Source of the DNA: Podarcis tiliguerta
Taxonomy: Eukaryota
Assembly (NCBI GenBank): GCA_965153285.1
Contig: OZ229119.1
Strand: one strand, 5' to 3'
Length of the DNA stretch: 64,000 nucleotides
Below, piece by piece: positions 5,497-63,497 of this stretch. The stretch's first letter is position 1, and each line of letters starts with the position of its first letter. A model generated the notes under the pieces. It was given only the letters and a program-made list of their open reading frames with translations. It made no database searches and was not told where the DNA came from. A program made the translations under genes and the position numbers.

Positions 5497-5955
5497 GCAG
5501 TGTACAAGTTGGCCGATGTCTCCTGTAAGTGCCATGGCGTCTCAGGTTCCTGCAGCCTCAAGACCTGTTGGCTGCAGCTGGCTGACTTCCGCAAAGTGGG
5601 AGACCTCCTGAAGGAGAAGTACGACAGCGCCGCCGCCATGAGGATCAGCCGCAAGGGCAAGCTGGAGCTAGTGAACAACCGCTTCAATTCGCCTACTCCA
5701 GAGGATTTGGTGTACGTCGACCCCAGCCCCGATTATTGCCTGCGCAACGAAACCACGGGCTCCCTGGGCACCAAGGGCCGGCTCTGTAATAAGACCTCGG
5801 AGGGTATGGACGGCTGTGAGCTGATGTGCTGTGGCCGAGGCTATGACCAGTTCAAGAGTGTGCAGGTCGAGCGTTGCCACTGCAAGTTTCACTGGTGCTG
5901 TTACGTCAAGTGTAAAAAGTGCACAGAGATTGTCGATCAGTACGTCTGTAAATGA
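5497..5955 (+). CDS. WNT5B: Wnt-5b, last coding exon ([25 protein letters not shown]...[14 protein letters not shown])
   Basis: Pyrimidine tract plus ccatAG acceptor at 5495-5496, phase-0 entry GCA GTG TAC, stop TGA at 5953-5955. Contains the Wnt signature [10 protein letters not shown] (palmitoleoylated Ser) and the C-terminal Cys pattern. Residues such as [29 protein letters not shown] and SVQVERC are Wnt5b-like rather than Wnt5a-like, and adjacency to ADIPOR2 matches known WNT5B synteny. Upstream exons lie outside the window. Confidence 0.96.
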
Positions 5956-12897: not shown

Positions 12898-14749
12898 CTA
12901 TTACATTATTTAATCCAATACATTACAATATAAATTAAATATTTAAATCCTATAAATATCACACACACAAGTCTTCAGTTTCTGAATAAGTACCTAAGAG
13001 AGTCCCTTTGCTGGAGGTCATATGTATCAGCTGCCTCTCAAAGTCCCAGTTTGCCATTGGAACCTCACAATCAGGCCACAAAGGCGAGACTGCCCTCTCA
13101 CTGTTGTTGTTTTTCTATAAAAACAGGACATATTCATTTCTGAAATGCCAATAAACCATTTTTGTTTTAAAGAGCACAGTATTTAAATCCAATTTTATGT
13201 TACTATATGAGGTATGATGAATCATGTTTACTAAATCTTTGTGGTTTGCATGGCTTGGCAAGAATGAGGACAACGGCTGTAGAATTCTAAGCATGCTGTC
13301 TCATAAGGAAGTACCATTCAATGTAGGGAGATTTAGGATACTTCCAGATGGGGTCTTTATATTGCAAACAGGTCATTCAAATCTGATTGTTTTGTGTGCA
13401 TAATTTGCATGTTAGCTTCAATGCATTTCCTTTTTTCAGACATGGTATTTGTTGGAATTCTGCTGTTTGCCATCCACATTAGTGGACTGAACTTGATGGG
13501 ATTGGTTTCCCCACCCCACCCCCATAGCTACTCCTTCTCCATCTTTCACTGCCTCCTTCCAGTCTGGGAATGTATTTTGTACCCATGTGCACAGCTTTAA
13601 AAACAAACAAACCTCGTGAAAGTGCGCAGAATCAGAATTACCAGTCCTTCATTATTAAGTTTTACAATAGGCAAAATGGAGTTTTATGCTTTTGGGAGGG
13701 GTTGGGGAAGGGATATCAATTTCCATCACTTCGCCCCCCCCCTTAATATACTGAGGTTTTGGGCAAGAGTGATATAGCTATATTCCTCCAGTAATTTGGT
13801 AGAGGCATGTGAAAATGCTGTATTTAAAATGTGCAATAGGCTCCCATAACATTGAACAGCACAAGCACACATTCCATCACCCAAAAAAACCACAGCAGCT
13901 TTGAAATACTGAAACAAGAGGTCTTATGCAAGCTATATATATACTAAATATAGATATTTCAAAATGTTGTGAAGTAATTCCCCATATGTAGTGTGTGGAT
14001 GAAGAGCAAGGTTGCTGAAATTTGGATGTGGCAATCAGTGAAAATTGGTCTCATTTGGTCTTGGGACTGCCTGTCTGAAAGCATAATTACTGCCTGGTAA
14101 GGATTACAACCTTCCAGTGCAACATTACACATATCTACTCTTGACACGGCTCAAGGTCGCCCACAGAATGTGCAGTTTTGCACCTTAATCTCACTTACAT
14201 CATTGCAACATCCACAGTTGGGCAATACTATTTACTGAGGCAAAACAAAAAATATTGACGACAGTGTGGCAAACTTTGAGTCGTCCAGAACTCTTCACTG
14301 GGCAAAGTTATCACACAAAGCAGAGAAGTGTGCGTGCCTGACGACAAGTTCTGTAGGACTCGGAAGGTTGCGATACTTTTATGACATTTTGGCTGGTCCC
14401 CCCAAAAGCACCGCTCAGCTGTTTTGGGAGGGTGCCGCCAAGAGGGCTACCTTTGCCTTTTAAATTACCGTACTTAAAACCCCAGCATTGTCATGACTGC
14501 AGGAAAAAAGTAGGAGTCTCCTGCTGCTGCTCTAAACAACATTTATTTGGGAAAGAAAGTAATAAAATTAAACACAAGCTTTGGCAACCATGTACATTGC
14601 TGGCCTCAAGCTATATACATACTTTTCTTATCAAGGAGGATATATTATACAGTAATAGGGACCAGTATTGCCACTTTCCCCTTCATCTGTCGCTGCCCTG
14701 AGGTCCTTCCCACTCCTCCTTTTGGAACCTCACCGCCTTCCTCGTACTT

Positions 14750-15640
14750 TGAAATCAACAAACCGCGCGAGCGCGCCGTTGAAAAACAACCGCCGCCTGA
14801 GCAACAGCCCCGCGCGACTCCGCTACTTCCTTAAGCAGCGCTCACCCATTACGCACTTTGCGCGGCGGCGGCCGAACCAGAACGCTTTAAGAGGACGCTT
14901 TAAGAGCCCGCGACCTACTTTCCTACCAATACGGAGGCGGCGCCTTCGGTTTCGGCAGGGTCACGCGCTCAAGCCGCCCGCCTCCGGGAAAACTACACGT
15001 CCCAGGGTGCCCTTGGGCTGAGCCTCCCCGCCCCTCCTCCCCCGAGCACGTCCTCCCGGCGTGGCTGACGCCTGCGCGTCCTCCGATTACGACGCTCCGC
15101 CGCCCATTGGCTGGCCGAGCCTCTTGCGATGATGACGCGCTCCGGGGCAAAGGGGAGGCGACGGGAGAGCTGAAAGAGGTGGCGAGTGAAGGCGGAGGGG
15201 GCGGGATTCCCGGAGGCGCCGGCGGCACCGTGGGGACTCCCTCCCTCCGACCCCCCTCAGCGCCGGACACAGCTGGGCAGCGGAGTGAAGGCCGTCCGGT
15301 AAGCCGGGCTGAGGGGCTGGGGGGCTCCGGGTTGGGGCGCCCCCTGAGGAGCGGGCGGCGGGGCCTCGGCCGGCTTCGCTGCCGGCTGACATAGGCCGCG
15401 GGGTGGGGGGTGCGACCTCCGACCTCCTCGCTCAGGGCCTCCTTAGGCCGCGGGGGTCGTGGTGCTCGCGGGGCGCTCTCTGCCGGATGACCTCGATTTC
15501 CTGCACTCGAGCCCCTCCTCTTGGGCGGCTGCTGCTGACCTTGGGCAAGTCACTTATCGCCTCTTCTCCCACCCCGGGAGCTGTAGTGATAAGTGGCTGC
15601 GAACGGCTTTCGGACTCTCGCGAAACGCCCAAGAGTTTTA
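14750..15640 (+). promoter_or_regulatory. ADIPOR2: CpG island / ADIPOR2 promoter
   Basis: Sharp rise in GC and CpG against an AT-rich, CpG-depleted background. CCAAT at 14926-14930 and ATTGG at 15106-15110, GC box CCCCGCCCC at 15026-15034, ZNF143/THAP11-type ACTACAcgTCCCAGGGTGCC at 14992-15011, TGACGC half-CRE sites, and TCTCGCGAAA at 15616-15625. Confidence 0.88.
15150..15298 (+). other. ADIPOR2: ADIPOR2 non-coding exon 1 (start approximate)
   Basis: Donor CCG|GTAAGC with GT at 15299-15300 inside the CpG island, followed by a G-rich intron start. ADIPOR2 orthologues have a non-coding first exon. The TSS cannot be fixed from sequence. Confidence 0.7.
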
Positions 15641-17265
15641 CTTTTTAAATAAATAAATGACCAACTCCCTTGAGTGTTGTATCCGGTACCTAATACACCT
15701 GTATAGTTTGAGTCTTTGGGTATACTGAAGTAATGGAATTATTAATTAACAAGCAAACAGTGGTATTTTTTTAAAAGGCTTTTCTGCCGCCCTACGTGCT
15801 TAAAGACGCAAAACCAGCGAAGTTTTGTGTAACCTTTTTAAAGGGCTCACGAATTTTATTATGGTGTGTGGCTTTGTGGCCTCTTAGTTGATATCTCTGG
15901 AAGTTTAAGACGAAAAGAAAGAACTCAAAAACCAAGCAACTCCATTCCCGCTCTTCTCCCCCCCTCCCCCGCAAAGTAACCATGGTTATCATCCTAAACA
16001 CACTTAACACACTGCCCCTTGGGCAGCCTGCCTTACTTCTGAGTAAACATGGGCCTGCTCTTGGTTTTCCACACACATTTGGGTAGTCTTAATTGTTAAT
16101 CATCACTTTAGGAGATGTCCCAAATGGTGACAACACTTGAGGTGAAAAGCGCTGGTCATGTTTTTGTAAACTGCTTCACAGCTGTTAGCAGTTTGAGCTA
16201 ATTTGAGGAAATGAAGTGTTAAGTAGTTTTGAGGACTTCCATTTCAATAAACATGCAGAGGGCTACTTGTGAATCTCAACATTTCTATTGAGAATGTCAG
16301 TTGTCTGGGTATTTTGTACTGTACACTAGGTGTAAACCTGGACAAGAAAATGAATCTGATAAAATACTGATGTGAGAAAATACAAGTACAACCAGAGAAC
16401 TATTTTACTCTGGTGGAGAGTGTGCTAGGCTTAAAATATAACTATTATGGACAAGGCTTGGTATCAGCAATTGTGTACTTGTGTCTGTTGGCAGAAGGTA
16501 CAGCTTACACATATTTGAAATATTGGTAAAATGACAACTGTTCGCATGTATTTTATATTTGGAAATACTGCTTTACTCAGAAATCTTAACACACCTGGCC
16601 TTTTGTAAAATTGGTACTGCAATTTTTTCTTGAGAATGTGCAAAACTAATGTTCAAAGCCTATGCACTCCTTGGAGTAAGTGTAATTGAACTTAACATAA
16701 ATAAGTATGTGTATCATAAATGAGAAGTTAATCTACCTAGTTATGGAATCTTGAGCAGATTCTAGAATAGTAACTTATTGGCTGCAGTGGCAAAAAACAA
16801 ACAAACAATGACCGTTTGGCACACCAGAGACCAAGGCTACAATCTTTTTCAGAAACTCAAAGAAGTGTACAACCAACTTCACCAAAACAAAATAAAACAA
16901 TATTTTAAACCTCTATATTCTCATATATGAAACATAGTGTATCTGAAAAGTACAGTGTCACTCAAAGGATTGACAAAACAGAAGTTAAATAATGTTCTTG
17001 CAGTGGCTTGCAACATTGTTTTGGTGGCTTGTATCCATCACTGCTGTTTGTTGGATTAAATCTTAGTGGCTCATAGAAAGGCCCAAATGTGGCCCTAACT
17101 TCAACAGTCCTTTGCATTCACGTATAGGTTTAGGATTCTCCCAAAGTGGTCATCTAATTATTTATAGCTTTGTTACCAAGAAACATATTCCTTGTTTATA
17201 AAGAAACTGCATATATGGTAACTTCACTCTAACAAATATAGCTTTTTATGTTTTCAAACTGTACT

Positions 17266-17465
17266 NNNNNNNNNNNNNNNNNNNNNNNNNNNNNNNNNNN
17301 NNNNNNNNNNNNNNNNNNNNNNNNNNNNNNNNNNNNNNNNNNNNNNNNNNNNNNNNNNNNNNNNNNNNNNNNNNNNNNNNNNNNNNNNNNNNNNNNNNNN
17401 NNNNNNNNNNNNNNNNNNNNNNNNNNNNNNNNNNNNNNNNNNNNNNNNNNNNNNNNNNNNNNNNN
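17266..17465. other. Assembly gap (200 N) in ADIPOR2 intron 1
   Basis: Run of exactly 200 n. Confidence 1.
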
Positions 17466-44220: not shown

Positions 44221-45039
44221 TACTGGGAATACTATTAAGCAAATATTGGTTTTAATTATCGTGAACTGTCAGTTCAATCTGTGGGCTGGAGCAGACAAAA
44301 CACCTTTGAAGTTTATGCTTCCACGACTGATGTAAGTGCTGCACTTTTTTGGTCAATCAGTGGTACACGAAGGCCAAAGTTTCTTTCTGCCACTCACAGC
44401 CCACTGGCAGGGAGTCTTTATTTCAAGGCTTGTGCTACAGTCTCTAGTGTACTTAGAAAGCTAGAGGTATATTAACATATTTTGAACAATTGTACACAGT
44501 GGGTGTGTAGTATACATTTTAGGGCACTTGAGAATGAAATCAGGTTTACTTCATTTTCTACAACAAAAAGAATTTGGTCTGATTAAAGAAATTATAGTTG
44601 GTTGATTTGCAATTTTAAATGATCTGCATAATAAAAGTCACTTGAATAAAATGGTGACTTTGGAATGGAAAAGCATACTTTATCTAGTATTTAAGTGGTG
44701 TGTGTATATCTGCGTGTGTGTGCGCGTGTATGTGCTGCAGCAGGCATAGTATTGAAGGAGGATATGCCTCCTGGTTGCAACAGAAGAGAGAATGCCTCTT
44801 CTAAAATGACATTTGGCACTATGATTAGAAGTACATGGATTATTATTTTTTAATGTGTTCCCAGATTGATCAGGGGCTCCTCTCTAGTTGACCAAATGGG
44901 TTGTGGCCCTAAAAACCAACCACCCAAGTAATCTTCCTGCTCTGCTTTGGGATCCTGAGCTTTGGCAGTTTGCCCTCATCTCTGCCACTGCTTCTCTTGT
45001 GTCCAAGGCTGAATCTGTCCCACTTCCCTTATCTCCTAG

Positions 45040-45233
45040 GAGTGTTTCTGGCTCTGGGCCTTAGTGGGGTCATCCCCACCCTGCACTTTGTCATCACGGA
45101 AGGGCTCCTCAAGGCTGCCACAATGGGGCAGATAGGCTGGCTGGCTCTCATGGCCTGCCTGTATATCACTGGCGCTGCACTGTATGCTGCTCGCATCCCG
45201 GAGAGGTTCTTCCCGGGCAAGTGTGACATCTGG
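45040..45233 (+). CDS. ADIPOR2: ADIPOR2 coding exon 6: (G)VFLALGLSGVIPTLHFVITEGLLKAATMGQIGWLALMACLYITGAALYAARIPERFFPGKCDIW
   Basis: atctcctAG acceptor and TGG|GTAAGT donor, 194 nt. Contains the RIPERFFPGKCDIW motif. Confidence 0.97.
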
Positions 45234-45877
45234 GTAAGTATGGCTAATAGATGGCAGGCACATAATAGGGAGGGTGAGAGGCATTAATCCCTACTGCATA
45301 TCTGCAGTGATGGATCACTGTGGTCTGTGACCGGGCTCCATAAAGACACAGTTCTATAAATGCCTCTTACTGCTCAGTTCTGGGCTAAAATGGAGCCCTG
45401 CTGTGCAACTGCTAACTTTAAAACCCTGTGAAACTCTGCAACCTTCTCTTGGTAGGCATTACAAGAATGAAAAATATTTGCACTGTATCTGCCTTGGCAT
45501 ATCTGGCTCCCAAGAGAGGGAATGGTGCACAGCTGCAAAAATACAACCATTCTGATACAGCGCTGTTAATGCTCTGTGTTTGTTTGTTTATGTGTATGCG
45601 AGCATGTATCTTGTCCTCTAGCCAGTTATGCCAAGTTGACTGGGGCTGGGTGGGTTTAAATTGGCACCTCTTGGTGCTTGCATAGTCTGTTCACACAGAG
45701 AAACAAACAATGGATTCCTAGGATGCAAGAGGGCTTATTCTTTGGCTGGTTGATACTTCACAATCTCTTCTTACTAGCCAGCACCACCTGTGATGCCCTC
45801 CTTTGGTGACTGTTCTGGAAAATGGGAGTCTCCATTACCTAAGGTGAAACGGTGTTCTGTTTTTCTCTCTCCCATAG

Positions 45878-46003
45878 TTCCACTCCCACCAGCTGTTTCA
45901 TGTGTTTGTAGTGGCTGGTGCATTTGCGCACTTCCATGGAGTTTCAAACCTTCAGGAGTTCCGCTTCACAGTTGGCGGAGGCTGCTCAGAGGACGAGATG
46001 TAG
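45878..46003 (+). CDS. ADIPOR2: ADIPOR2 last coding exon: FHSHQLFHVFVVAGAFAHFHGVSNLQEFRFTVGGGCSEDEM*
   Basis: ttttctctctcccatAG acceptor, HxxxH zinc ligands (HQLFH), tandem stops TAG TAA. Exon phases sum to an intact 1149-nt CDS. This frame is absent from the ORF track. Confidence 0.96.
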   Translation, partial: FHSHQLFHVFVVAGAFAHFHGVSNLQEFRFTVGGGCSEDEM

Positions 46004-48505
46004 TAAAACTGACCGCTTGTCCAAGATCGTAACCAAAAAAGCAGAACCGTTGGAGCAGTCAGTCTACACCTGACCCAGGATGGTGTAGAAGCTTCGCAGG
46101 GATTCTAACTAAAACTTGGAAGAGAAATTCATACCTCAAGCATTGGAGTGAATTGATTCTGAAGACCTGGAAGTTCTTAAACCCTAATTTATTCCTGGGG
46201 TCTACAGACTAAGCTACAGAAAGCCCTTTCTTAATCAGCTTCTGTTCAATGCCATATTTATTTGTAGAAAAACAAGAGGGGTTGTCATGGGGAGATGGCT
46301 TAGCATTTTTTTTCTTTTTTAAAATCTAGCTTGATTAAGATTTGTATCTTGTTCAGGTAAGTTGATTTTTAGATGCTCTTTTGGGAGGAAAAATGTAAAT
46401 AAGATTTCTAACATTCTGTTTAATTGAAAAGTTTATATAAATGTTTTAAAATTGTGTGGGAGGGGAGGGTTTTTTTGTATAGATTGCAACATGCAAGTAC
46501 CACACACTGTTTCAAGTTTGCACGAACCCTTTTAAGTGCAAGAGGGCCAGGTGAAACCCCTGCAGCATCTGGGTTCTACAGATTCTTCCTAATGTTTGGG
46601 GATGTGCTGGACAGCTAGACCCAGCAGGCTCAGTCTGCACACAAGGGTTCAGGGTAAGCAAGTGTGGACAACCTTAAATCGGGCTGACGCTTGGGCCCCT
46701 GCACGTTCAGAAGGCAAAGGCAGGAGACATTGTGCAGCTGAGCTCTGCTCCCTTGGCAGGGCGTGCCTTCTAAGATCTCTGCCATTTTGTGGGTAGTCTT
46801 TAGGTGGTCTTTCTTTCCACCAGCCTTTTGCTGTGTTGGGATTTGATGGCTTAAGGCACAATATGGTATGTATCTTGACCTCTTTGGCAGTGGGGTCTCT
46901 TGTCAGTGTTTCACCATTCAGTTGGGCCTGCTATCCTTTTTTATCCAAGTGCAATTGTTAGTGTCAGGCATCTGCCTTCTAGTTGAAAGACAGTAGGAGA
47001 AGATGGTCTGCAGGGAGTGAGGAGGAACATATGAAAAAGCAGCCTAGACTAGCTGTTAATTCATTCTAGAGTATGTTGTGTGCTGCTGAACTACAGTAGC
47101 ACTAAGGTTGCCCGGTATTAAATTCCACCAAGCTCCACTTGGCTGCAATGTAACACTGCCGATCCTTCTTGCTTCCTTCTGGTATATAAGACAACGCTGC
47201 GCACTGGGCTTTTTTCTTTCTTTAAAAAGAAGAGCAGCTTGCAGAATCTGCTTGGATATTACATTTTTGCCTCTCCTCAAAAGAGTGCTTGGTACCCAAG
47301 AGAAGCTTGTTGTCTCTTTAAAAACTTCCCCAGATAGCTTAACTGCTTGTGGGGTAGCCGTACATTCTGAGAAGGGCAAATTGTCACTAAGCAGAACACT
47401 CAGTCAGGCAAGAAGTGTAGTTGCTGTTTTCTCCTGCTAGGCTGGTGAGGCATGTCAGAGATGGAGAGAAATGTTTTGACACAGTGTAGAATTTGTGTTG
47501 TTGAATACTCACAGTGGGGGCAGTTCCTTTGGCCCATAGTATAATTAACTACAAGTGTTGGGAGATGATAGAATTTGTCACATGTTAAACTGCTTTTTTG
47601 ATTATTAGAAGGAGGTTGGTCTTTCTGTCTTTTCTCTCTCCCGCCCTCAAAACAGAACCTTAGTGTTTAGACCTACAAGAGGTGCTTAACGGGTGCTTGT
47701 AGGCAACTTCAGATGAGTATATCCTGGGTAGGATCCTGATGTGCTGAATGCAGATAGGCCAGAATGGCACCCTAACACTTCTGATTGTTCAATCCCATAC
47801 TAAAAAAACAGAACAGTATTAATTGAACCCCTTTAATGGAACAGGAAGGCCAGTAATCATTTAATCTTCCCAGTGGTAAATGTAGCCATCTGGAAGAAGG
47901 GTGGCTTGCCTGATGGGGTAAGTGCTAATACATATCAGACTCAGATCTACTTATCTGAAAAGCATTTTTTTTTTTTTTTTTGAGAGAGAGAGAGGGGTGG
48001 TAGGCTGCTTCTGTATTAGCAGCAGAAATAGCACCTCCCCATTCTAGATCATCCTATGCTCACTCCCAGAAAGGGTTTCTCACAACCTGGTCCTACAGCA
48101 CACAACCTGTACAAAAACACACCCTCCACTTACTCTACCCCTTTGGTCTCTGTTTAGGACATTTTTTTGTGTCCCAATAAGAAAAACTGCTTAGCTGTGC
48201 ACTTTTCCGTGGTGCTTGCTGAGACTTCTTCCCAGGTTGGCACCTGAATGCCTTACTCTCAGCAATCGGAGGTTTGCTTGCTTCCTTTGTGTGTGCAGGT
48301 TTTCAGTGTAGTATAGTTCAGAGTTACAGCTTTCTTTTCCCATTAACTAGTGGCCTTGTTCAGTATTTTCTTTTTTAAAAAATTGCTTACTGTTGGAGGC
48401 GACAAAGCACATCTTGGACTTTGAAGATTGGGGTCTCCGGGCAATGGGATCTCATTACTTGTTGTATTCTTAACTTCTAATAAAAAGAGCAAATGCAATG
48501 GAGGC
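46004..48505 (+). other. ADIPOR2: Probable ADIPOR2 3'UTR ending near AATAAA at 48479-48484
   Basis: Repeat-poor, U-rich 2.5-kb stretch. The canonical AATAAA is followed about 30 nt later by GU-rich gggtgttgtctttttggt. Confidence 0.65.
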
Positions 48506-50502: not shown

Positions 50503-50598
50503 TCACCGCAAGAGAAGAGCTGTGGTTCCCAGAGGAAGGAAGAGCAGGGCTAATGAGGCAGAAATCTCTGCCGCTCCTCCACAGTCCTGGGCGTTTTC
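50503..50598 (-). CDS. CACNA2D4: CACNA2D4 last coding exon: ENAQDCGGAAEISASLALLFLPLGTTALLLR* (GPI-signal-like tail)
   Basis: On the minus strand, ctttgtttttcAG|GAA AAC GCC CAG GAC TGT GGA GGA, stop TGA at 50505-50503. ENAQDCGGA matches the alpha2delta-4 C-terminus, with a small-residue omega site followed by a hydrophobic tail. Confidence 0.92.
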   Translation of the reverse strand, partial: ENAQDCGGAAEISASLALLFLPLGTTALLLR

Positions 50599-51093
50599 CT
50601 GAAAAACAAAGCAAGTATGTGGTCAGCAAGTAGAATTTAGAGGGCAGCAAAAATTAAAGCCTAGCTTCATTTTAACTTGGGCCAAATGATTGAAACTTTT
50701 TTTGCAATGGCGATGGCCAAATCCACCTCCCGATAAAAATTGATCCATTCATAGGGCTGGCAGGATAAACTGTGTCCGTGCAGAATATGCGTGCTCATGA
50801 GTGCCTACCACATGGCAAGGAACCCAATGCACTTGGCTATATGTATAACGTGTGCACAGGCTTGCTGCATACATCACATCAAACACACACTGATGGACAG
50901 GTGGGGGCACTGTGCCCTATTTTTAGGGCCTCCACATAGGCAAACAAGTGAGGCAGCCTTGAGGTGGTTAAAAATGAATCTATGGACTGACATTTCAAAA
51001 CCCAGCTTATTTTATTTAGGCCAGCACATTATCATGGCTGCTGTGGCGCAGAGCCTACTTTGTCAAATGCAACAATTCCTCAACCCGCCTTAC

Positions 51094-51176
51094 CTCAGGA
51101 TGGAATGCATGGCAGGTATCTGGTCGCCGCCTCAGCTTCTGGGAGCGCATCCTGTCACATTTCACTGACGCATTAT
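51094..51176 (-). CDS. CACNA2D4: CACNA2D4 penultimate exon: (Y)[27 protein letters not shown]
   Basis: 83 nt, preceded by an AC acceptor (U12 type) and followed by GAG|GTAAGG. The peptide is nearly identical to alpha2delta-4 as I recall it. Confidence 0.95.
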
Positions 51177-53006
51177 GTGCAGTGCTGTTAAGGTTAATAG
51201 CAGTTTGGGGAAATGGTGAAAATCAGAAACAATCCCATTTATGGAGGAGCTGTGTTGCCCCAGAATTCCAGTTTACAACTAGGCTGTACAAGTCATAAGA
51301 TGTATTCCCATAGAGGTGCCCTTGATTATGAAGCTACTGCAAGGCCTTTACTCACATGGAATGCCATGCACTCATTCTAGCATAAAGGGTGCTGTCACAG
51401 GCAGGACATGTCTCAAAATACTTATGCTACACCTGGTAAGTAAAGGTAACGGTAAAGGGATCCCTGACCATTAGGTCCAGTCGTGGCCGATTCTGGGGTT
51501 GCGGCGCTCGTCTAGCTTTATTGGCTGAGGGAGCCGGCGTACAACTTCCGGTTCATGTGGCCAGCATGACTAAGCCGCTTCTGGCGAACCAGAGCAGCGC
51601 ACGGAAACGCCGTTTACCTTACCGCCGGAGTGGTACCTATTTATCTACTTGCATGTTGACGTGCTTTCGAACTGCTAGGTTGGCAGGAGTAGGGACCGAG
51701 CAACGGGAGCTCACCCTGTTGTGGGGATTTGAACCACCAACCTTCTGATCGGCAAGTCCTAGGCTCTGTAGTTTAACGCACAGCGCCACCTGCGTCCTGG
51801 TAAGTAGGTGGGCTCAGTTAAGATCAGCTAGGATTTTTGAGCATAGTTAATCTGAACACTGCTTAAATTCTATTGAAACTAGTAGGAGTTAATTTTCCCA
51901 TTGATTTCAACATGATTTTAGTTGGAATGGAGCCATCATGGGTGGCTGCAGAACCAAGCAGCAGCTTTCAAGGCTAGTGATCACACTTAATGAGCAAGCT
52001 CCACTCCAGGAGCAGTTAGCCAGGGGTAAGACCTACTGGAAACAATGGGACATAAGTTAGTCACAACCACCTTGAGCATAATTAGGGCTACAATCTACAT
52101 ATTTTTCCAGGACTATTGCTGCAGAGCTTAAATTTGTCTACTGAAGGAGAAACTTACTGTTATATTAACTGTGTCTTCATAGTTTCATGTGTATGCCTTT
52201 AAAAGAAGTATTCCTTGCAAGTTTTTTAAATAACCACTCTTTCCCCCACAAACATACACTCCACTGCCCCAATGTAAATCTCCCTGTTGGTGTCCTATGC
52301 ATCTATGCCATGGTTCTGGTCCAGAACAAGAGTCCCTGCAACTGTAAAAAGCAAACACGTGCCCACATGGGAAGAAGTAGCTCCCGTAATAAGCAGTTTC
52401 ACCCTGGCATTTTGGAGCTGCAATGCACAACATCTTTCTGTACCATTCACTGGCTTACAGCAAATAAGTCCATTGGTCCATCTCACACAGTATTAATGTA
52501 TTATGGTACACAAAGCACATGGTCCACCATTGACCTAGGACTCCTTCCTTAATTAGGCTTCTATTTTGCAAATGCTAATGAAACCAACAGCATCTTCATC
52601 TACACAGAACTGTGTGGGGACATACTTCAGAGTGAAGACTATTTTCAGGTTCTAGAGAGAGTTTAAAAACTAAATAGCTCTTTCCGTCTAAAACTAAATC
52701 TCTTTCTGTCTTATGCCTGGTACCCCTGTGTTTTTTTCTTTCCACCTCCTTTCCAGCAATTGAGGAGGCATCTAGAAAAATGCACACAATCAATCCATAT
52801 AGAACTTACCAAACAACAGTACGCAATCGTAATTAGCAGCACATTAACTTGCCATTGCTTTTGCCATGCTTTCCATTAGAACGTATGCAAATTCTTCCCA
52901 CCCCAAAGAACTACTAAAGCAAACCCTCTGCATCAATTCACTGTTGGAAAAATGTAAAACACAAGAACTGTGCAGCCCAGTACAACCTCTACCGGAAGAA
53001 GGATAT
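51177..53006 (-). other. CACNA2D4: U12-type (minor spliceosome) AT-AC intron of CACNA2D4
   Basis: Minus-strand 5' end |ATATCCTTC (53006-52998), branch site CCTTAAC (51193-51187), 3' end GCAC| at 51177, no polypyrimidine tract. The junction T|AT restores Tyr in EVKYNAS. Confidence 0.93.
51443..51797 (-). mobile_element. Sauria SINE, full length, inside the U12 intron
   Basis: Same head, body and tail as the 3644 copy. TSD cctggtaagta at 51432-51442 and 51796-51806. Confidence 0.92.
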
Positions 53007-53119
53007 ATTTGACTTCTTTAGGTTGCAGTAGGACAGGTGGAAAGATGCTGCAGTCACATACAGCATCCACAACCAGGAGCAGGAGATTGCTGTTGGTAAT
53101 TTGCTGCACCACAAACATC
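53007..53119 (-). CDS. CACNA2D4: CACNA2D4 exon: (K)MFVVQQITNSNLLLLVVDAVCDCSIFPPVLLQPKEVK(Y)
   Basis: cccttacAG acceptor, 113 nt, QQIxNSNLLLLVxDxxCDCS motif of the delta subunit. It lies within track ORF 52933..53145. Confidence 0.95.
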
Positions 53120-56700: not shown

Positions 56701-57102
56701 ACAAGGCCTGGTTTCCAGTGAAGAGTGTGGCTGAGGAGAGTTCTAAGGACCAGACAGAGAGACTAGGAGGGCAAAATGTGGTTCTGGGTCTGAGGTCCCC
56801 CACCTGTGCACTAGGCAAAGAGTGTGTTCAAGGCAGACCTTGGTACCTGGCAGGTTCATGCAGAAGGAAGTGGTCTGTGAGGGACCTGGGTCCTAAGCAA
56901 TTGTCACTACTATTGTTATTAACGGACACTTGAATTGAGGTTGGAATAGTTCATAGTTGCAGGCAATTCAGAAGAAATTGTGGAAAATAAGAGGCATTGC
57001 AAGGATAACAAGGGACAGTTAGTTTGCTTGGAGATCAGACTAACCAGGGACAATTGAGAGGCACAGGTAGGAGAAAAGGAAGAAAGAGAGCACATTTCTT
57101 AC

Positions 57103-57220
57103 TTCTGACAGTCTCCGCATTCAATAATCCCATTGGTCTCTTTGATGGCAGGTTCATATACAAACACTGGGTATTCTGTGTCACATGGCTGTAGCATGTC
57201 GTGCTTCTTGTGCTTGTGAG
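57103..57220 (-). CDS. CACNA2D4: CACNA2D4 exon: (A)[38 protein letters not shown](K)
   Basis: cctctttttccccatctcAG acceptor and AA|GTAAGA donor, 118 nt, [11 protein letters not shown] motif. Phases match the flanking exons. Confidence 0.95.
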
Positions 57221-57326
57221 CTGAGATGGGGAAAAAGAGGCTGAGTGAGAAAATCAGGTGAAGGAAACAAATGAGGTGTGGAAAAAAGAAGCGGAAAAAT
57301 GTTGACCCAAAAACGAAGATTACTGG

Positions 57327-57343
57327 CAGCCACTAGGTGGTGT
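57327..57343 (+). promoter_or_regulatory. CTCF-like motif, forward (one core mismatch)
   Basis: CAGCCACTAGGTGGTGT. Confidence 0.4.
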
Positions 57344-60300
57344 GGGAGACTCAGTGTATGAGGATGCCCTAGAAGCATGAATATGGCCACCCTTCAGCCA
57401 ATGGTCGGATTATGTAGCTATCAGTCTGACAGGCTGTTTACTGCTAGAAAGTCAAAATACACAAACAAGTGGGAAACCACTTGCAGTTAGTTCATGGTTA
57501 GAATCAAACCAGCTGGCCAAGACATTACTAGGTGGCTCATATGGGGGAAACAGGAAGACTTTTTACTAACGACAGTGACTGCGTGAAATATAGCGGGCTG
57601 AGCTGGGCTAGTACAGCACCAATCTTTAGTAACTGCAGCTAAATACCTAAGAAGGAAGCTTTACTAGAAAGAAAGTCCACTACCCAGCTCCCACTAGCCA
57701 ACATAGGAACTGACTACTTGCAGTGGAAAGATCTACATTTTGGGGACCCTGAAGCTTGAACTGTTACGGGGGCCCTTCGGCATCAGCAACAAAGCCTGAG
57801 TAACCACTGTTATCTTCTTCAATGGGGTTGTTCCATGACAGATCACCAAACCTTTACAACACCTGTGCTACTGACTTTCAGACTTTGGAATTGTTGAAAT
57901 ATATACAAAAATAATAATAATCACTTTTGAAGTTTCTGGAAAGCTGAAATCCAAAACATTTAAGAAAGCATAAATATTGTTAATTTTGTTGCATGTCAAC
58001 ATTTTTAACATTTAGGTGCATTATTTATTTATTTTAAAGAAACACCAGGTGTCATTGTGATATTTTGAAGGACAATGTATGATGTTTAGATTTGAGGATA
58101 GCTGAGATAATGCATGGATATGTTTGCACAGAGAAAAAAATAATTAGCTGCCAGATAGTCAGGGAGTGGGTGAACTGGTTGGTTACCAATAACAGCAGAA
58201 GTTTGCATTTGATAAAACTAACTGTGGGGCTGCTGTTCTTCAAACAGAGAAATGCCTAAAATGCTGTTGGACATTTGCATCACACTGGCCTGAGGGAGAA
58301 AAGCTGTGCTGGCATTTATTCTCTTGTGTGATGACGACAACTCAGAGACGCAAAGATACTGCAAATGTCACACAAACACGTATAGAGTCTGTGTCACTCA
58401 TTGGGAGTCGAGACAGTGACAAATATCCAAAAAACACACCTTTTTCTAGTTTGTTTTTAATCTATCCATTTTTATCTCCCTGCCCTTCAAGGAGCTCAGG
58501 ATCCTCTTATCATCACAACTCCCTTCTCAGGTAGGTAAAACCTGTGAACTCTTGGAATTGGAATCAAGCAGGTGGTTGAGCTTGTCCAACACTCTAACAA
58601 TCCTGGCTCTTTCACAAATCTGTGACTGTAGCTTTTGTGAAAATTGCAGTGCTCTCTAATCTGGACACAAAGCTTGCAACACCATTGCACACAAAATGAA
58701 GACTTGTGTAGCCCATCTGTCAAGCACCAGTGAAGCGGGGAGAGAGAACGGGACTCGCCTTTCCTTGTTGCTTCCTGCTGGGAAGTGAGTATCAGAGCTC
58801 CCATTGCTTTGTCACAATGGCACCTGTCCTTCCTGAGGGGTTTGCAGGTGACTGAATCTCTGCTTCAGTGAAACCATCACTGACAATCTGATTCCTCCCG
58901 TTGCTTTTCTTTGCCTGTAATGTTGTTCACCAAGTTTCCCTCAACGTAGCTATGCAGCAGATTCCCTGTTCTAATCTTTCAACTATGAAGCAGGCTATTT
59001 TAACACAACCTCCCTCAACTGGGATTAAAACCGAAATAAATTTATGCCAGATGGTGCAATGAGTATTGCAAACAACACCTATTTCTTCTTCCTAGGTCTT
59101 ATTAAGTTTCCATGCTGTATAGCAAGGATTTGTCCGGTCCTGCATATGTCACCCTGATGTTTTGCATTACCCCTCTGCCCTAAATTGGTTGTCTTGTCTA
59201 AGGTCTTCTAGATAAGATTCCAACCTGGAACCCCTCAACTCACCAACTCCCTAAAAACTAATAAAGGCAGCTGATTAGACAGCTTGTTTACAATGTGACA
59301 AAATGTAGGTGGGCAGGAGTCTTAACCACAGTGCAATCCTGATTGGGGGAGCCAGATTTAGCATCTGTATAGATAGACCCCATATTCAGCACTCAATATA
59401 TTTTCTAGGTTTCTCTTCTAGTGCACCTTACTAAAACCTAGAAATTACCCAACATGGAAAATATGTGGCCTATCCAGGATGCAAAACTGTGAGTTACAGC
59501 CGTGCAGTTACATGTCCACAACCAGCTCACTTTACATATCCAAACTTTGACTCTCCCTCTCCTCAAGGTAGAACTGCATCAGTGTCATGTATGGAAGGGA
59601 AGATCCACAGCATGCTTTCCATCTTCTTATTGTGTTTCATTCACAAATAACATTTGCTCTTGGAGCCACAGAGATTCATTCTGTTCAAACTCCCTTTTGT
59701 CTCTCTGTTAAACCACACTTTAACTGGATCGGAAGTGAATTTCCTCATACCCCAAACAGTTCCTTGGACCCAGAGCAATAACAGCAATAAATTGAGCCTG
59801 GGGAGAGGGAACAAATCCAGTCAGCTTCAACAGCGCAGAACACAGTGAAGCCACGGCTACATTTGGGGCAGGGCATTCCCTTCCCCCCTCACCCCCCAGC
59901 TTCATTCCACAGATGAGCATGAATTAACACCTGAGCAGCATCGGCAAAAGGGAGCAAAATGTCACTGCCATCCTGATATTTGCAGTCACATTGATCTGGA
60001 AAAATAACAACAGAGATAGGTTTTTAAATTGCTGGCATTTCACTGTCAGCAGGGCAGCCCAAAGATATTTTTTTTCTAGCCCAAGCAGCCGTCCATGTGA
60101 CCAGAGATCGGCACCTCTGCACCATTTTATGATATAGCAAAGGGCATTGAGTTTCTGTATCTCTGCTTTCCTAAGTCATATATTATTAAATATACAAGAC
60201 CACTGAGTGGTTTACATAAAACACAGTAAAATTGTATGAAATCTCTCTCACAGATTGCTAGATGTTACGGCACGTGCACAGGACAGCTGCTCCCCAGCGG

Positions 60301-60728
60301 GGGGGCTGGTGTCTATTGGGATAGGCAGGCCGTAAGGCATGGATGCCAACAGTAGGAGGAGCCAGAGCTGATGATAGGCAGAACTAATTCTAGTTTAACC
60401 CCAATCCTCCTCCATAGAAGGGCAACAGTGGCACTTCTAAGAAACCAGCAGGCAGGGCCAGCCCCTGGACTGGTTGTGAGAAAGAAGGCAGTTGGGAGCT
60501 GGTTGCGGTTGGTAGGGCAGTGCCCTATTGGCCTAACAGATCAGCGCCCACTGCCTTCGGAAGCAATCTGTGCTCCCTTCTCTGTCTTCCAGCCCTCATG
60601 GGGAAATAACTAAACCCCCAAATATTACTCTCCACCAGTTACTCCTATGCCCCTGTCCTACTTCCCCAATTCCTCCGAGGCTTATAATCCACCAGCAAGA
60701 GTCTGGAGGATTGGAGCCTCTTAGCCCC

Positions 60729-60772
<44 letters not shown>

Positions 60773-60792
60773 ATCTATTTATTTATTTATTT
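60729..60792. repeat. (TCTA)n(TTTA)n microsatellite
   Basis: Directly visible. Confidence 0.97.
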
Positions 60793-61084
60793 GAATTTAT
60801 ATACCGCCGTCTCAGGGCAGTTCACCCTTACCTACCTGTAGGCCATCCTGGCTGATTACCGGCTGGGCTACTCATGAGCAAGCAAGCAGTTTAACAGCTT
60901 CTTCTCCACAGGAGCTTTAGCAACTGCTGATGTTTGGAATTTGGGAAGGAAATACTACCTCTTGCCAGGATATCATAGAGAAGGTTTTTTCTCTCCTTGA
61001 CTAAGGGCAGGCTGGTGCTCAGCTGACCTGGGAAGTACCCTCACATGCCCCAGCTCTTACATGTTGAAGCTTTAGTGACATACT

Positions 61085-61252
61085 GGAACATGGGAAGTTA
61101 CTGGACTGTCTAGCTCAGTATGGTCTACACCAATTGGCAGCAGCTCCTCAGGGTTTCAGCTCGAAGCTATTTTCAGCCCTACCTGGGAAATAAGGATTGA
61201 ACTTGGTGTCTTCTTCATGCAAAGCAGGTGCTACACCACGGAGCTATGGCCC
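61085..61252 (-). mobile_element. tRNA-derived SINE (Squam3-like)
   Basis: Same family. Minus-strand head gggccatagctccgtggtgtagcacctgctttgcatg with a B-box-like gttcaatcc. Confidence 0.7.
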
Positions 61253-62800
61253 ATCCCCTGTTGTTGGGTTTACTGGTAGCTAATCATGATGACAAATAGT
61301 GTAAACGATGCAAAGAGTTTTAATATTTATCTTGGTTAGCTATATCTTATTGACATAAGGGCAGCTCCCATATTCCTTATTTCTATAGACAAGCCATTTA
61401 TCAGCCAGCCTTTGTCTGAATGGTGGAGGGGGAATAAAGGGCTAGAGCTGCTTATTCAGCCAACCTGTAATCATATCTGCTTCTCTAACATAAATAAATT
61501 ATGAGAAAGTTGAATGAACTTATTTATTGAAGTTGCTCTAGCCATCAGAACCTGACTATCTGCAGTTGTCTGAATAATACAGTTTTGCTGGATTTCCAGT
61601 TGAGTGATTACCACCTGTCCTCATGCAATTCTGCAAACAGGCTGAAGTTTCTTTCGGATAGATTCTTGCCCACCTCTAGCTAATTATCTCTACTTGCATT
61701 TTGTACCTACTGAGAATGCAAGAATGTCCTCTCATGTTTCTTTCTGAGCTCCATATTTGACCTGGATCCTCTGATTATTATGGATCCTTTTAGAGCAACC
61801 ATAGTACATGGGAGCTCTGCTTGGGGCTCAACTAAGGTTACCTCCCTTCCTGCATGATGCAACCACCACCATGTCTTTTCTCTTGCACGAGTGGCACCTC
61901 CCTAGTCCACCCTTCCTCCTTTCTTCATCATCCTGTTGTTGGGTTTACTGGTAACATGCTAATTATCATGCAAACACTTAGGCCTGGCCTGATTCAATTA
62001 CCACTCATGAACAATTGAACAGAGGAAATAACTCCTTGAAGTTCTTACTCTACCTCTAGACCTTGGGATACTAAGCATTATTTGAGACATCAGGCGCCAA
62101 CTCCAGAAGCAGCACCTATTGGTCTGGCCTAGTATGACAGATAGCAAGATCAGACTGTAGATTAAAAGCACCATAGGAAGGCCTATGCATTTGTATAATG
62201 TGTAAATGTATTGAGAATGATATGGGGGGGAGGGAGGGGGTAGAATAGAAGATGGAATGCTGATAAACCTTGCAACTTTTCAAATACTAATTTGTTCCTT
62301 TATAATGGACCAGGCTTGTTGTAAAATATCATTAATATTGAAGGGCAAGATTTGCAAATATCAATATAAGATTCACTTTAGCAGTGTACAACAGAATTCT
62401 CCACCCATTGCCTATTTCCCAGTAAGAACTGCTGCCATGCAACCTTAGTTCATTTCAGCAAGGCTTATATGGGTGAACCCACATGCTTTGCACAAGCTGC
62501 TGTTGTTTGCACATATTGGCACATCCCTAGAGCTGCTGTACATCTTTATATTCAAGGTTACAGCTGGACCAGCAAGTGCAGAAACGTGCAGTGAAGTATG
62601 CCAATCACAAAGTGAGTGGTAGCCCAATAATTAAACAAGTAGTGATATCTCTGTTTTCAACTAGGCAGTCGCAGCTAATTCCTGAACAGCTGTGAAGTGG
62701 GAAAGAAATTGCCCCCAGTTTTCTGGGCAAATCTGCTTGGGTGTTCTCCTGTTTCCAGAAAATGGAGATCTTTTTGCCGCACTATAATGATTCTACTTAC

Positions 62801-62821
62801 CATGATGGAAAACAGCCTTAG
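62801..62821 (-). CDS. CACNA2D4: CACNA2D4 21-nt microexon: (A)KAVFHH(A)
   Basis: On the minus strand, tatatAG|CT AAG GCT GTT TTC CAT CAT G|GTAAGT, phase 1-1. It corresponds to the AKSVFHHS segment that precedes HKHKK in mammalian alpha2delta-4 as I recall it. Confidence 0.88.
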
Positions 62822-63442
62822 CTATATAGGTTGCATGGCATAACATGTGATGCAGATGAATCCATGATGATGATCACAAGATGGTGGTAGAATTCCATGG
62901 TGAAGACACATGAATAGGAAGAATGGGAAATGAAGAAAGAAAGAGGAAGAATGACATGGTGGTGAAATGAAGAAATAATTGTTCACAATAGCAACAATGA
63001 GTGTGAGACTACTCCTTAAAATTCACCTGCCTTTACAGTTAACTAAACTGCTGTTTCATGAAAAATATGTTTTATTGTCTTATATCCTTCTTTCCTTCAC
63101 ATAAGCCTATGTGAAGTGAATGTGATTTACTTAAAAATACGAGAATATTTGACACTGAAAGCTTTGGCCTGCACACTCCTAAATGTTTAGGAGCAGGCAA
63201 TGCTTTCAGAAACAAGTACAATATTGGAAGTACACCCTGGACTAGAGAGAGACAGCTATTCTATCTGGTTAAAATATGTGTAAGCAACATAATGTATGTA
63301 ACCAGCATATTACTGTTGCCAAACCCTAGCAGGCAGTACCATAAGTAACATTTGCTGTATGAGATTGTGCTTTTGAAATGATTCCTGCCATTTATTATTA
63401 TTTTTAAACGAAACGAATTAAGAATTAATTATATTTAGAAAG

Positions 63443-63443
63443 T

Positions 63444-63495
<52 letters not shown>

Positions 63496-63497
63496 TC
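63443..63497. repeat. (TTTC)n microsatellite
   Basis: Directly visible. Confidence 0.98.

Follow-up and report, generated by a model that had tools for sequence, protein, structure and literature searches.

A conserved 21-nt alternative microexon of CACNA2D4 preceded by a 185-nt AG-free zone in the lizard Podarcis tiliguerta

The window analysed here is a 64-kb stretch of DNA from the lizard Podarcis tiliguerta (contig OZ229119.1, assembly GCA_965153285.1), and its minus strand carries, at 62821-62801, a 21-nucleotide (nt) microexon of CACNA2D4, the gene for alpha2delta-4. Judged by comparison with homologous proteins, this exon is real, is conserved from sharks to mammals and is alternative. 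It is preceded by a 185-nt zone that has no AG dinucleotide and is dense in YCAY motifs and, at odds that we place slightly above even (about 0.55), it would be a conserved alternative microexon with an extended, regulated 3′ splice-site region of the type used by SRRM3/4 (eMIC). An initial annotation of this DNA, made from the letters, had proposed a cell-type switch in which the exon is included in photoreceptors and skipped elsewhere, with NOVA bound to the YCAY motifs as the repressor. The positions of the exon, of the elements around it and of the other features of the window are given in Table 1.

The exon that follows the microexon (57220-57103) was used alone as a query, exons being taken singly rather than joined into a spliced model in every search. 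A phmmer search with it against 1.84 billion representatives returned 77 matches, all of them alpha2delta fragments, the best with 95% identity. The names that these fragments carry at source, from Varanus, Grus, Xenopus, Castor, Chiloscyllium, Perca and others, are alpha-2/delta-4 and, on the strength of these matches, the gene is CACNA2D4, with its 3′ part on the minus strand from ~50.5 kb to the end of the window. The 77 fragments fall into two forms, with or without a seven-residue insert at the microexon junction. Homologues with and without the seven residues, together with the alpha-2/delta-4 names, bear out the initial assignment of a 21-nt CACNA2D4 microexon. The Anolis sagrei homologue P0111 contains the domains VGCC_alpha2, VWA_N, VWA and dCache_1; among solved structures, full-length P0111 matches alpha2delta-1 chains only, and the 38-residue exon alone has no match.

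The microexon begins and finishes one letter into a codon, the frame being kept into the exon at 57220, and adds seven residues, K-A-V-F-H-H plus split Ala codons. Based on tblastn mapping, these are identical to residues 965-971 of P0111, and the nearest proteins are squamate. The exon preceding the microexon falls outside the window. The donor context, G/GTAAGT, is a strong 5′ splice site as judged by its match to the consensus. The acceptor region is interrupted by purines and, as first noted in the annotation, has no pyrimidine tract, the final 40 letters of the intron being 57.5% pyrimidine.

Two word-indexed searches with insert-bearing queries, which may favour insert-bearing matches, gave 203 sequences of at least 600 residues. 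The insert pattern is matched in 164 of these full-length relatives, most commonly as KAVFHHS (61) or KSFFHHS (24), and the insert is absent from 23, with a clean skip in 21 and different letters at its position in 2. Inspection by eye of the 16 sequences outside both patterns revealed 8 with a variant spelling of the insert, 1 with a shorter form, 4 without the anchor and 3 that are irregular. Sharks and rays carry the seven residues. Isoform pairs from the same species that differ by exactly these residues are found in Bufo gargarizans, Cavia and Sapajus, and the same seven-residue gap separates pairs from related rodents (two Peromyscus species; Mastomys versus Arvicanthis). Two further tiny alternative segments are present in annotated isoforms of the alpha2delta-4 homologues P0124/P0125, P0175/P0171 and P0108. 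One, of five residues, is conserved from sharks to birds and lizards and absent from the mammalian models examined; the other, of six residues, is seen in frogs and a falcon.

In mouse, a Cacna2d4 microexon has been described as switch-like and photoreceptor-specific (Murphy et al. 2016, PMC4991804; Matalkah et al. 2022, PMC9509328). It measures ≤30 nt, can be traced back to Chondrichthyes and is present in almost every photoreceptor transcript (Matalkah et al. 2022, PMC9509328). The lizard and mouse exons have in common the gene, a length of ≤30 nt, conservation to cartilaginous fish and alternative use, and from such comparisons it is very probable that they are the same exon, because the seven-residue cassette is the sole cassette difference of ≤30 nt in rodent pairs (Cavia, Peromyscus, Arvicanthis), the other differences being of 1 residue or 25 residues. 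The five- and six-residue segments were considered for the published mouse exon and rejected, as they are absent from the mammalian models examined and the rodent pairs are identical there. The present copy is from a lizard, and the available passages on the mouse exon describe neither an AG-free zone nor a YCAY array. In zebrafish, the microexon is used in the eye and also at a high rate in muscle (Matalkah et al. 2022 preprint legend). The photoreceptor switch of the initial annotation is therefore on record for mouse but, given the high inclusion in zebrafish muscle, is not uniform across vertebrates.

Contigs from four coded sequencing runs of relatives (X1, X3, X9 and X10; molecule type and tissue not on record) were compared with 57050-63049. 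An X1 contig (record 1, 2847 letters) matches 57102-57220 exactly, without differences, and continues past both ends, an X9 contig (record 25) lies on 57117-57220, and the loose end of X3 at 57102 reads into the exon at 53119. The exact exon ends and the joining of 57102 to 53119 identify the X1, X9 and X3 contigs as spliced RNA. Depth in the bin 62650-62849 equals that of 19 letters of the same contigs (X1, 12.2 x 19/200 = 1.16; X9, 3.29 x 19/200 = 0.31), and none of the 8 X9 records has its own listed piece in this bin. An X3 contig (record 24, 623 letters) lies on 62572-62819, after which its remaining 375 letters do not resemble the genome; the depth of X3 is zero at 62850-63049. We infer that the microexon is present in assembled mRNA of two related organisms, from three studies. 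The shared contig end at 62819, and not at 62821, would be consistent with a difference in the third codon position at 62820.

X10 record 16 runs unspliced across the whole region. In X3, the 5.6-kb intron after the microexon (57221-62800) is covered almost throughout and the contig departs from the genome at the microexon acceptor, which suggests that splicing removes the upstream intron before the downstream one, or else leaves the downstream one in place. Within the same intron, 57794-57848, 60334-60382 and 61109-61158 are short stretches at which many contigs of all four runs match, there only, before continuing as unrelated sequence; these are probably interspersed repeats.

The nearest AG upstream of the microexon acceptor is at 63010-63009, and the intervening run (63008-62824) is exactly 185 letters long, as the annotation had estimated. 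With the N-gap runs (17266-17465) set aside, it is the longest AG-free run on both strands of the window, the runners-up being 158 (minus) and 121 (plus) letters. Within it are 20 YCAY motifs (9 UCAU, 5 CCAU, 4 UCAC and 2 CCAC) and the exon contains 2 more, counts that agree with those first reported; the background is 3.1 ± 2.0 per 185-nt sliding window across the 64 kb. No other stretch is as dense, the next independent peak on either strand having 12. When YCAY motifs are chained at gaps of 12 nt or less, the zone yields chains of 13 and 5, whereas the biggest elsewhere in the window have 5 (minus) and 6 (plus) motifs. The 13-motif chain is, from these counts, the single locally striking feature and may or may not have a function. 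The RBFOX motif GCAUG was not found in the zone.

Eight candidate branch points of the form YUNAY are present in the zone (-36, -80, -90, -110, -142, -147, -177 and -183). All are weak (3-4/7), the best matching 4 of the 7 letters of a strong UACUAAC-like consensus. Those at -142 and -147 adjoin the 20-nt pyrimidine tract and have the best pyrimidine context, 85% across the following 40 letters. Farther upstream are the branch-like CTCAC and CTCAT, with their A at 63004 and 62998, where the annotation had placed them. A distant branch point for the microexon is, from this arrangement, plausible. The UGC and UAG motifs that had been pointed out on the two sides of the exon are also present, UGC at -14, -19 and -33 and UAG at +6 and +17.

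A long AG-free zone is the mark of a regulated exon whose branch point is distant (Gooding et al. 2006, PMC1431707). In human, 165 of 67,334 introns have such a zone of at least 150 nt, and the exons concerned tend to be alternative (PMC1431707). The lizard exon shares with these a zone of at least 150 nt, YUNAY motifs next to a pyrimidine tract in the direction of the zone's 5′ part, and alternative use; it differs in having no strong UACUAAC-like site, in having a proximal candidate and in that its branch is represented by candidates only. The resemblance extends to eMIC exons, which combine a long AG exclusion zone with a strong but distal pyrimidine tract and branch point, have a UGC between these and the AG, and pair a weak proximal 3′ splice site with a strong 5′ one (PMC9303857; PMC8797185; 10.1101/2024.09.17.613571). 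SRRM3/4 act via UGC near the acceptor, and retina microexons have upstream NOVA, RBFOX and ELAVL motifs (Ciampi et al. 2022, PMC9303857). Shared with eMIC microexons are the in-frame length of 21 nt, the long AG-free zone, the distal tract with a candidate branch, the UGC near the acceptor and the consensus donor, and shared with those of the retina are the upstream NOVA-type motifs. The 185-nt zone and the ~60-95 nt that separate tract from UGC are, in comparison, at the long end, and a response of the lizard exon to SRRM3/4 is putative. Cacna2d is not named in the available main text of Ciampi et al. 2022 (PMC9303857).

The zone is read as a regulated 3′ splice-site region because its layout matches this published eMIC design and because AG-free zones of at least 150 nt are rare. 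In the mechanism that we favour, the 187 nt preceding the microexon would form the extended region, with the main pyrimidine tract and adjacent branch candidates far upstream (-111 to -147), followed by an AG-free spacer of ~95 nt. The microexon would not be recognised by default, and its inclusion, inserting seven residues between the end of alpha2 and the first delta exon, would need the UGC-bound activator SRRM3, which is high in photoreceptors. Elsewhere, blockers might occupy the spacer or tract, NOVA on the YCAY motifs in other neurons and PTBP1 on UCUU outside neurons. The YCAY density may in part reflect the composition, poor in G and rich in CA/AU, by which the zone stays free of AG.

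Several observations weigh against this interpretation. No listed contig row joins the microexon to a neighbour, its inclusion being derived from the depth arithmetic together with three records that end at 62819. Identity with the mouse exon is reached by elimination rather than from coordinates, the passages available giving neither its length nor its position. The candidate branch point at -36 precedes all three UGC and, with help from SRRM3/4, could itself be the branch, making the far zone unnecessary, and the ~60-95 nt from tract to UGC are more than the 1-50 nt reported for the bipartite enhancer. Finally, when the zone was shuffled 5000 times by each of two procedures, mononucleotide shuffles gave 5.4 ± 2.05 YCAY, with 0/5000 at 20, whereas shuffles that preserve dinucleotides gave 16.5 ± 1.7, with 4% at 20. 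The YCAY excess is thus mostly the CA/AU/UC make-up of a G-poor tract (CA accounts for 25 of the 40 A, with 26 AU and 27 UC) and, from the sequence, the pattern resembles a NOVA cluster and also a CAU/UCAU-rich low-complexity tract.

An alternative, which follows the initial annotation, is that NOVA1/2 bound to the spacer and exon force skipping in non-photoreceptor neurons and that NOVA-free photoreceptors include the exon. In the NOVA RNA map, an exon is silenced when YCAY clusters lie before it or within it (Ule et al. 2006, cited from the summary in PMC10987577). Photoreceptors are without NOVA and RBFOX (Murphy et al. 2016, PMC4991804), and repression outside photoreceptors via the NOVA-type motifs enriched upstream of retina microexons has been proposed by Ciampi et al. 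2022 (PMC9303857), although a 2024 review by the same authors calls this model untested. The lizard exon has, as do NOVA-silenced exons, dense YCAY directly upstream of and inside an alternative exon; the chain of 13 (-14 to -112) with the 5 motifs upstream is by far the largest in the window, and 13 of the 20 motifs are UCAY. Its cluster is known from motifs alone and is largely explained by composition. The two YCAY within the exon follow of necessity from the conserved codons for Phe-His-His (CAY for His, preceded by UUY) and so are not independent evidence for NOVA. Ule and co-workers reportedly used, in 2006, conservation of the cluster as a criterion; within the microexon, conservation of NOVA motifs is inseparable from conservation of the protein, as Phe-His-His necessarily encodes overlapping YCAY. 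A literature search, which did not cover the supplements of PMC9509328, PMC4991804 and PMC9303857, found no paper that links NOVA, SRRM3/4 or an AG exclusion zone to this exon. Moreover, alpha2delta-4 is mainly retinal, so that repression in brain may have little target, and zebrafish muscle includes the exon. Silencing by NOVA is, overall, a tentative proposal and somewhat improbable as the principal explanation, but it can coexist with an SRRM3/4-type splice-site region.

Repression by PTBP1/2 of an exon with a distant branch point is about as doubtful. PTB would block U2AF and use of the branch from the UCUU-rich tract outside neurons and photoreceptors, and the YCAY would be incidental. 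The zone holds 8 UCUU and 6 UUCU, with one cluster of six chained YCU/UCY on the 20-nt tract. All distant-branch-point exons studied experimentally are PTB-regulated (PMC1431707), photoreceptor-regulated exons have PTBP motif clusters upstream and UAG clusters downstream (PMC4991804), and PTBP1 is reported, in the literature available, to antagonise SRRM4 at many microexons. Such clusters are, however, common, 21 being present on the minus strand of the window, and loss of PTBP1, being common to all neurons, cannot alone account for photoreceptor specificity. As the YCAY chain is far more exceptional in the window than the PTB cluster, NOVA is favoured over PTB as the specific reading of the spacer, although composition accounts for most of the YCAY.

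The annotation also invoked Musashi, on the basis of UAG downstream of the donor. The two UAG are there; Musashi-type enrichment was not found in the first 200 letters of the downstream intron, which contain 4 UAG where a uniform composition would give about 3. The exons reported to decrease in the Msi1/Msi2 double knockout are Ttc8, Cep290, Cc2d2a and Slc17a7, with Cacna2d4 not named in the passages available (PMC9509328). Among retina microexons, a response to SRRM3/4 is seen in 71% and one to MSI1 in 9% (PMC9303857). The low MSI1 response, the knockout list and the unremarkable UAG count all weaken this part of the proposal.

A third alternative is that the zone is a neutral, low-complexity relic, a decayed microsatellite-like tract with no regulatory role, the branch being proximal (-36) and AG being absent because the composition is G-poor. 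The zone is rich in T, C and A, with 17 G, most of its YCAY are explained by dinucleotide make-up, and an inversely oriented (GAAA)n array is found 450 nt upstream. In a related organism (run X10), 4 nt are missing at 62933, within the 20-nt pyrimidine tract, a loss that has the appearance of a microsatellite-like slip. By published estimate, only one-fifth to one-half of AG-free zones of at least 100 nt mark distant branch points (PMC1431707). A blastn search of the zone against the window found no second copy, the sole match being inverse, to a (TTCT)n array, and Tandem Repeats Finder (TRF) found no tandem repeat inside the zone; on these results a transposon origin was set aside. A neutral origin is nevertheless unlikely, as mononucleotide shuffling leaves the zone AG-free in just 1.1% of cases and the zone adjoins a real alternative microexon, with a layout that fits the published design feature by feature.

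The (GAAA)n array also raises the possibility of an RNA-structure switch, in which the array pairs with the pyrimidine tract and hides it. The duplex of 63443-63497 with 62893-62985 has a predicted energy of -34.9 kcal/mol, not equalled by any of 300 shuffles or of 58 other intronic windows, and the minimum-energy fold of 741 nt pairs the array with the tract (z-score -4.85). The pairing is lost in the centroid structure and the partners are two simple repeats of an ordinary type, so that a switch of this type is extremely unlikely. Also very unlikely, if less so, is the most elaborate scheme considered, in which the 99-nt chain of 13 YCAY would be a dedicated NOVA/PTB silencer, maybe reinforced by pairing with (GAAA)n, that together with SRRM3-bound UGC would form a cell-type switch. 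This would control the seven-residue insertion at the presumed alpha2/delta cleavage region and, hence, the proteolytic maturation of alpha2delta-4.

The background on which the initial annotation drew, namely NOVA-poor photoreceptors (PMC4991804), the use of UGC by SRRM3/4 (PMC9303857) and AG-free zones (PMC1431707), is in print, and its inference restates a published model. Each element, from the exon and its photoreceptor switch to the architecture and the proposed role of NOVA, has already been published for the class and, in mouse, for this gene.

Table 1. Coordinates of the microexon, its candidate regulatory elements and other features of the 64-kb window
Feature	Position	Strand	Basis
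21-nt alternative CACNA2D4 microexon	62801..62821	-	sequence; homologues with and without the 7 residues; 19-nt contig piece by depth arithmetic
Acceptor AG, weak proximal context	62822..62823	-	sequence; last 40 intron letters 57.5% pyrimidine
Donor GTAAGT, consensus	62795..62800	-	sequence
AG-free zone, 185 nt, T76 C52 A40 G17, 20 YCAY	62824..63008	-	sequence count
Chain of 13 YCAY between pyrimidine tract and acceptor	62835..62933	-	chaining at gaps ≤12 nt
Second YCAY cluster, 5 motifs, includes branch candidates A 62968/62963 (-147, -142)	62951..62970	-	chaining and motif scan
Uninterrupted 20-nt pyrimidine tract, 6 chained YCU/UCY (PTB/U2AF-type), -111 to -130	62932..62951	-	motif scan and chaining
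Branch-like CUCAC and CUCAU, A at 63004 and 62998 (-183, -177)	62998..63004	-	motif scan
Proximal YUNAY candidate branch A (-36), pyrimidine-poor downstream	62857	-	motif scan
Three UGC, 62854-52, 62840-38, 62835-33 (-33, -19, -14)	62833..62854	-	motif scan
Two UAG after donor, starts +6 and +17 of downstream intron	62782..62795	-	motif scan
(GAAA)n microsatellite of the pre-mRNA strand; complement of the pyrimidine tract in the zone	63443..63497	-	TRF, blastn, folding
Next CACNA2D4 exon, 118 nt, first exon of delta part, in-frame with microexon	57103..57220	-	phmmer, tblastn, contigs exactly on it
CACNA2D4 exon	53007..53119	-	tblastn
CACNA2D4 exon	about 51094..51176	-	tblastn
Last CACNA2D4 exon, ~50604 to stop near 50506	~50506..50604	-	tblastn
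wnt-family last exon	5497..5952	+	domain search
HlyIII/AdipoR-type exon	44913..45284	+	domain search
AdipoR-type exon	about 45887..46010	+	side observation

Downstream in CACNA2D4, the intron at 51177-53006 (minus strand), whose flanking exons map by tblastn, is of the AT-AC (U12) type, with the donor ATATCCTT at 53006 and a branch-like CCTTAAC motif ~10 nt ahead of the AC acceptor at 51177. The window also contains wnt-family and HlyIII/AdipoR-type exons, identified to the family level, with paralogue names not assigned. WNT5B and ADIPOR2 are presumably the expected neighbours of CACNA2D4, in the order of human 12p13.33. The AdipoR-type gene and CACNA2D4 are arranged tail to tail, and the stretch from 47 to 50.7 kb has polyadenylation signals on both strands. 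A GC-rich island (54% GC) is present at 14000-16000, upstream of the 3′ end of CACNA2D4.

The lizard exon is a well-formed new case of a known class of microexon, real but ordinary. It adjoins the presumed alpha2/delta processing region of a subunit that is needed for photoreceptor synapses; the physiological stake looks small, because CRISPR deletion of the mouse Cacna2d4 microexon leaves the electroretinogram and retinal morphology unchanged (PMC9509328). In practice, the value of the finding lies mainly in annotation, as a 21-nt exon is overlooked by gene finders, and in the warning that the entire 185-nt zone is sensitive to newly arising AG dinucleotides. If the YCAY array acts, the exon would provide a clean single-exon test of the published model in which loss of NOVA-type repressors, combined with high SRRM3, results in retina-only microexons.

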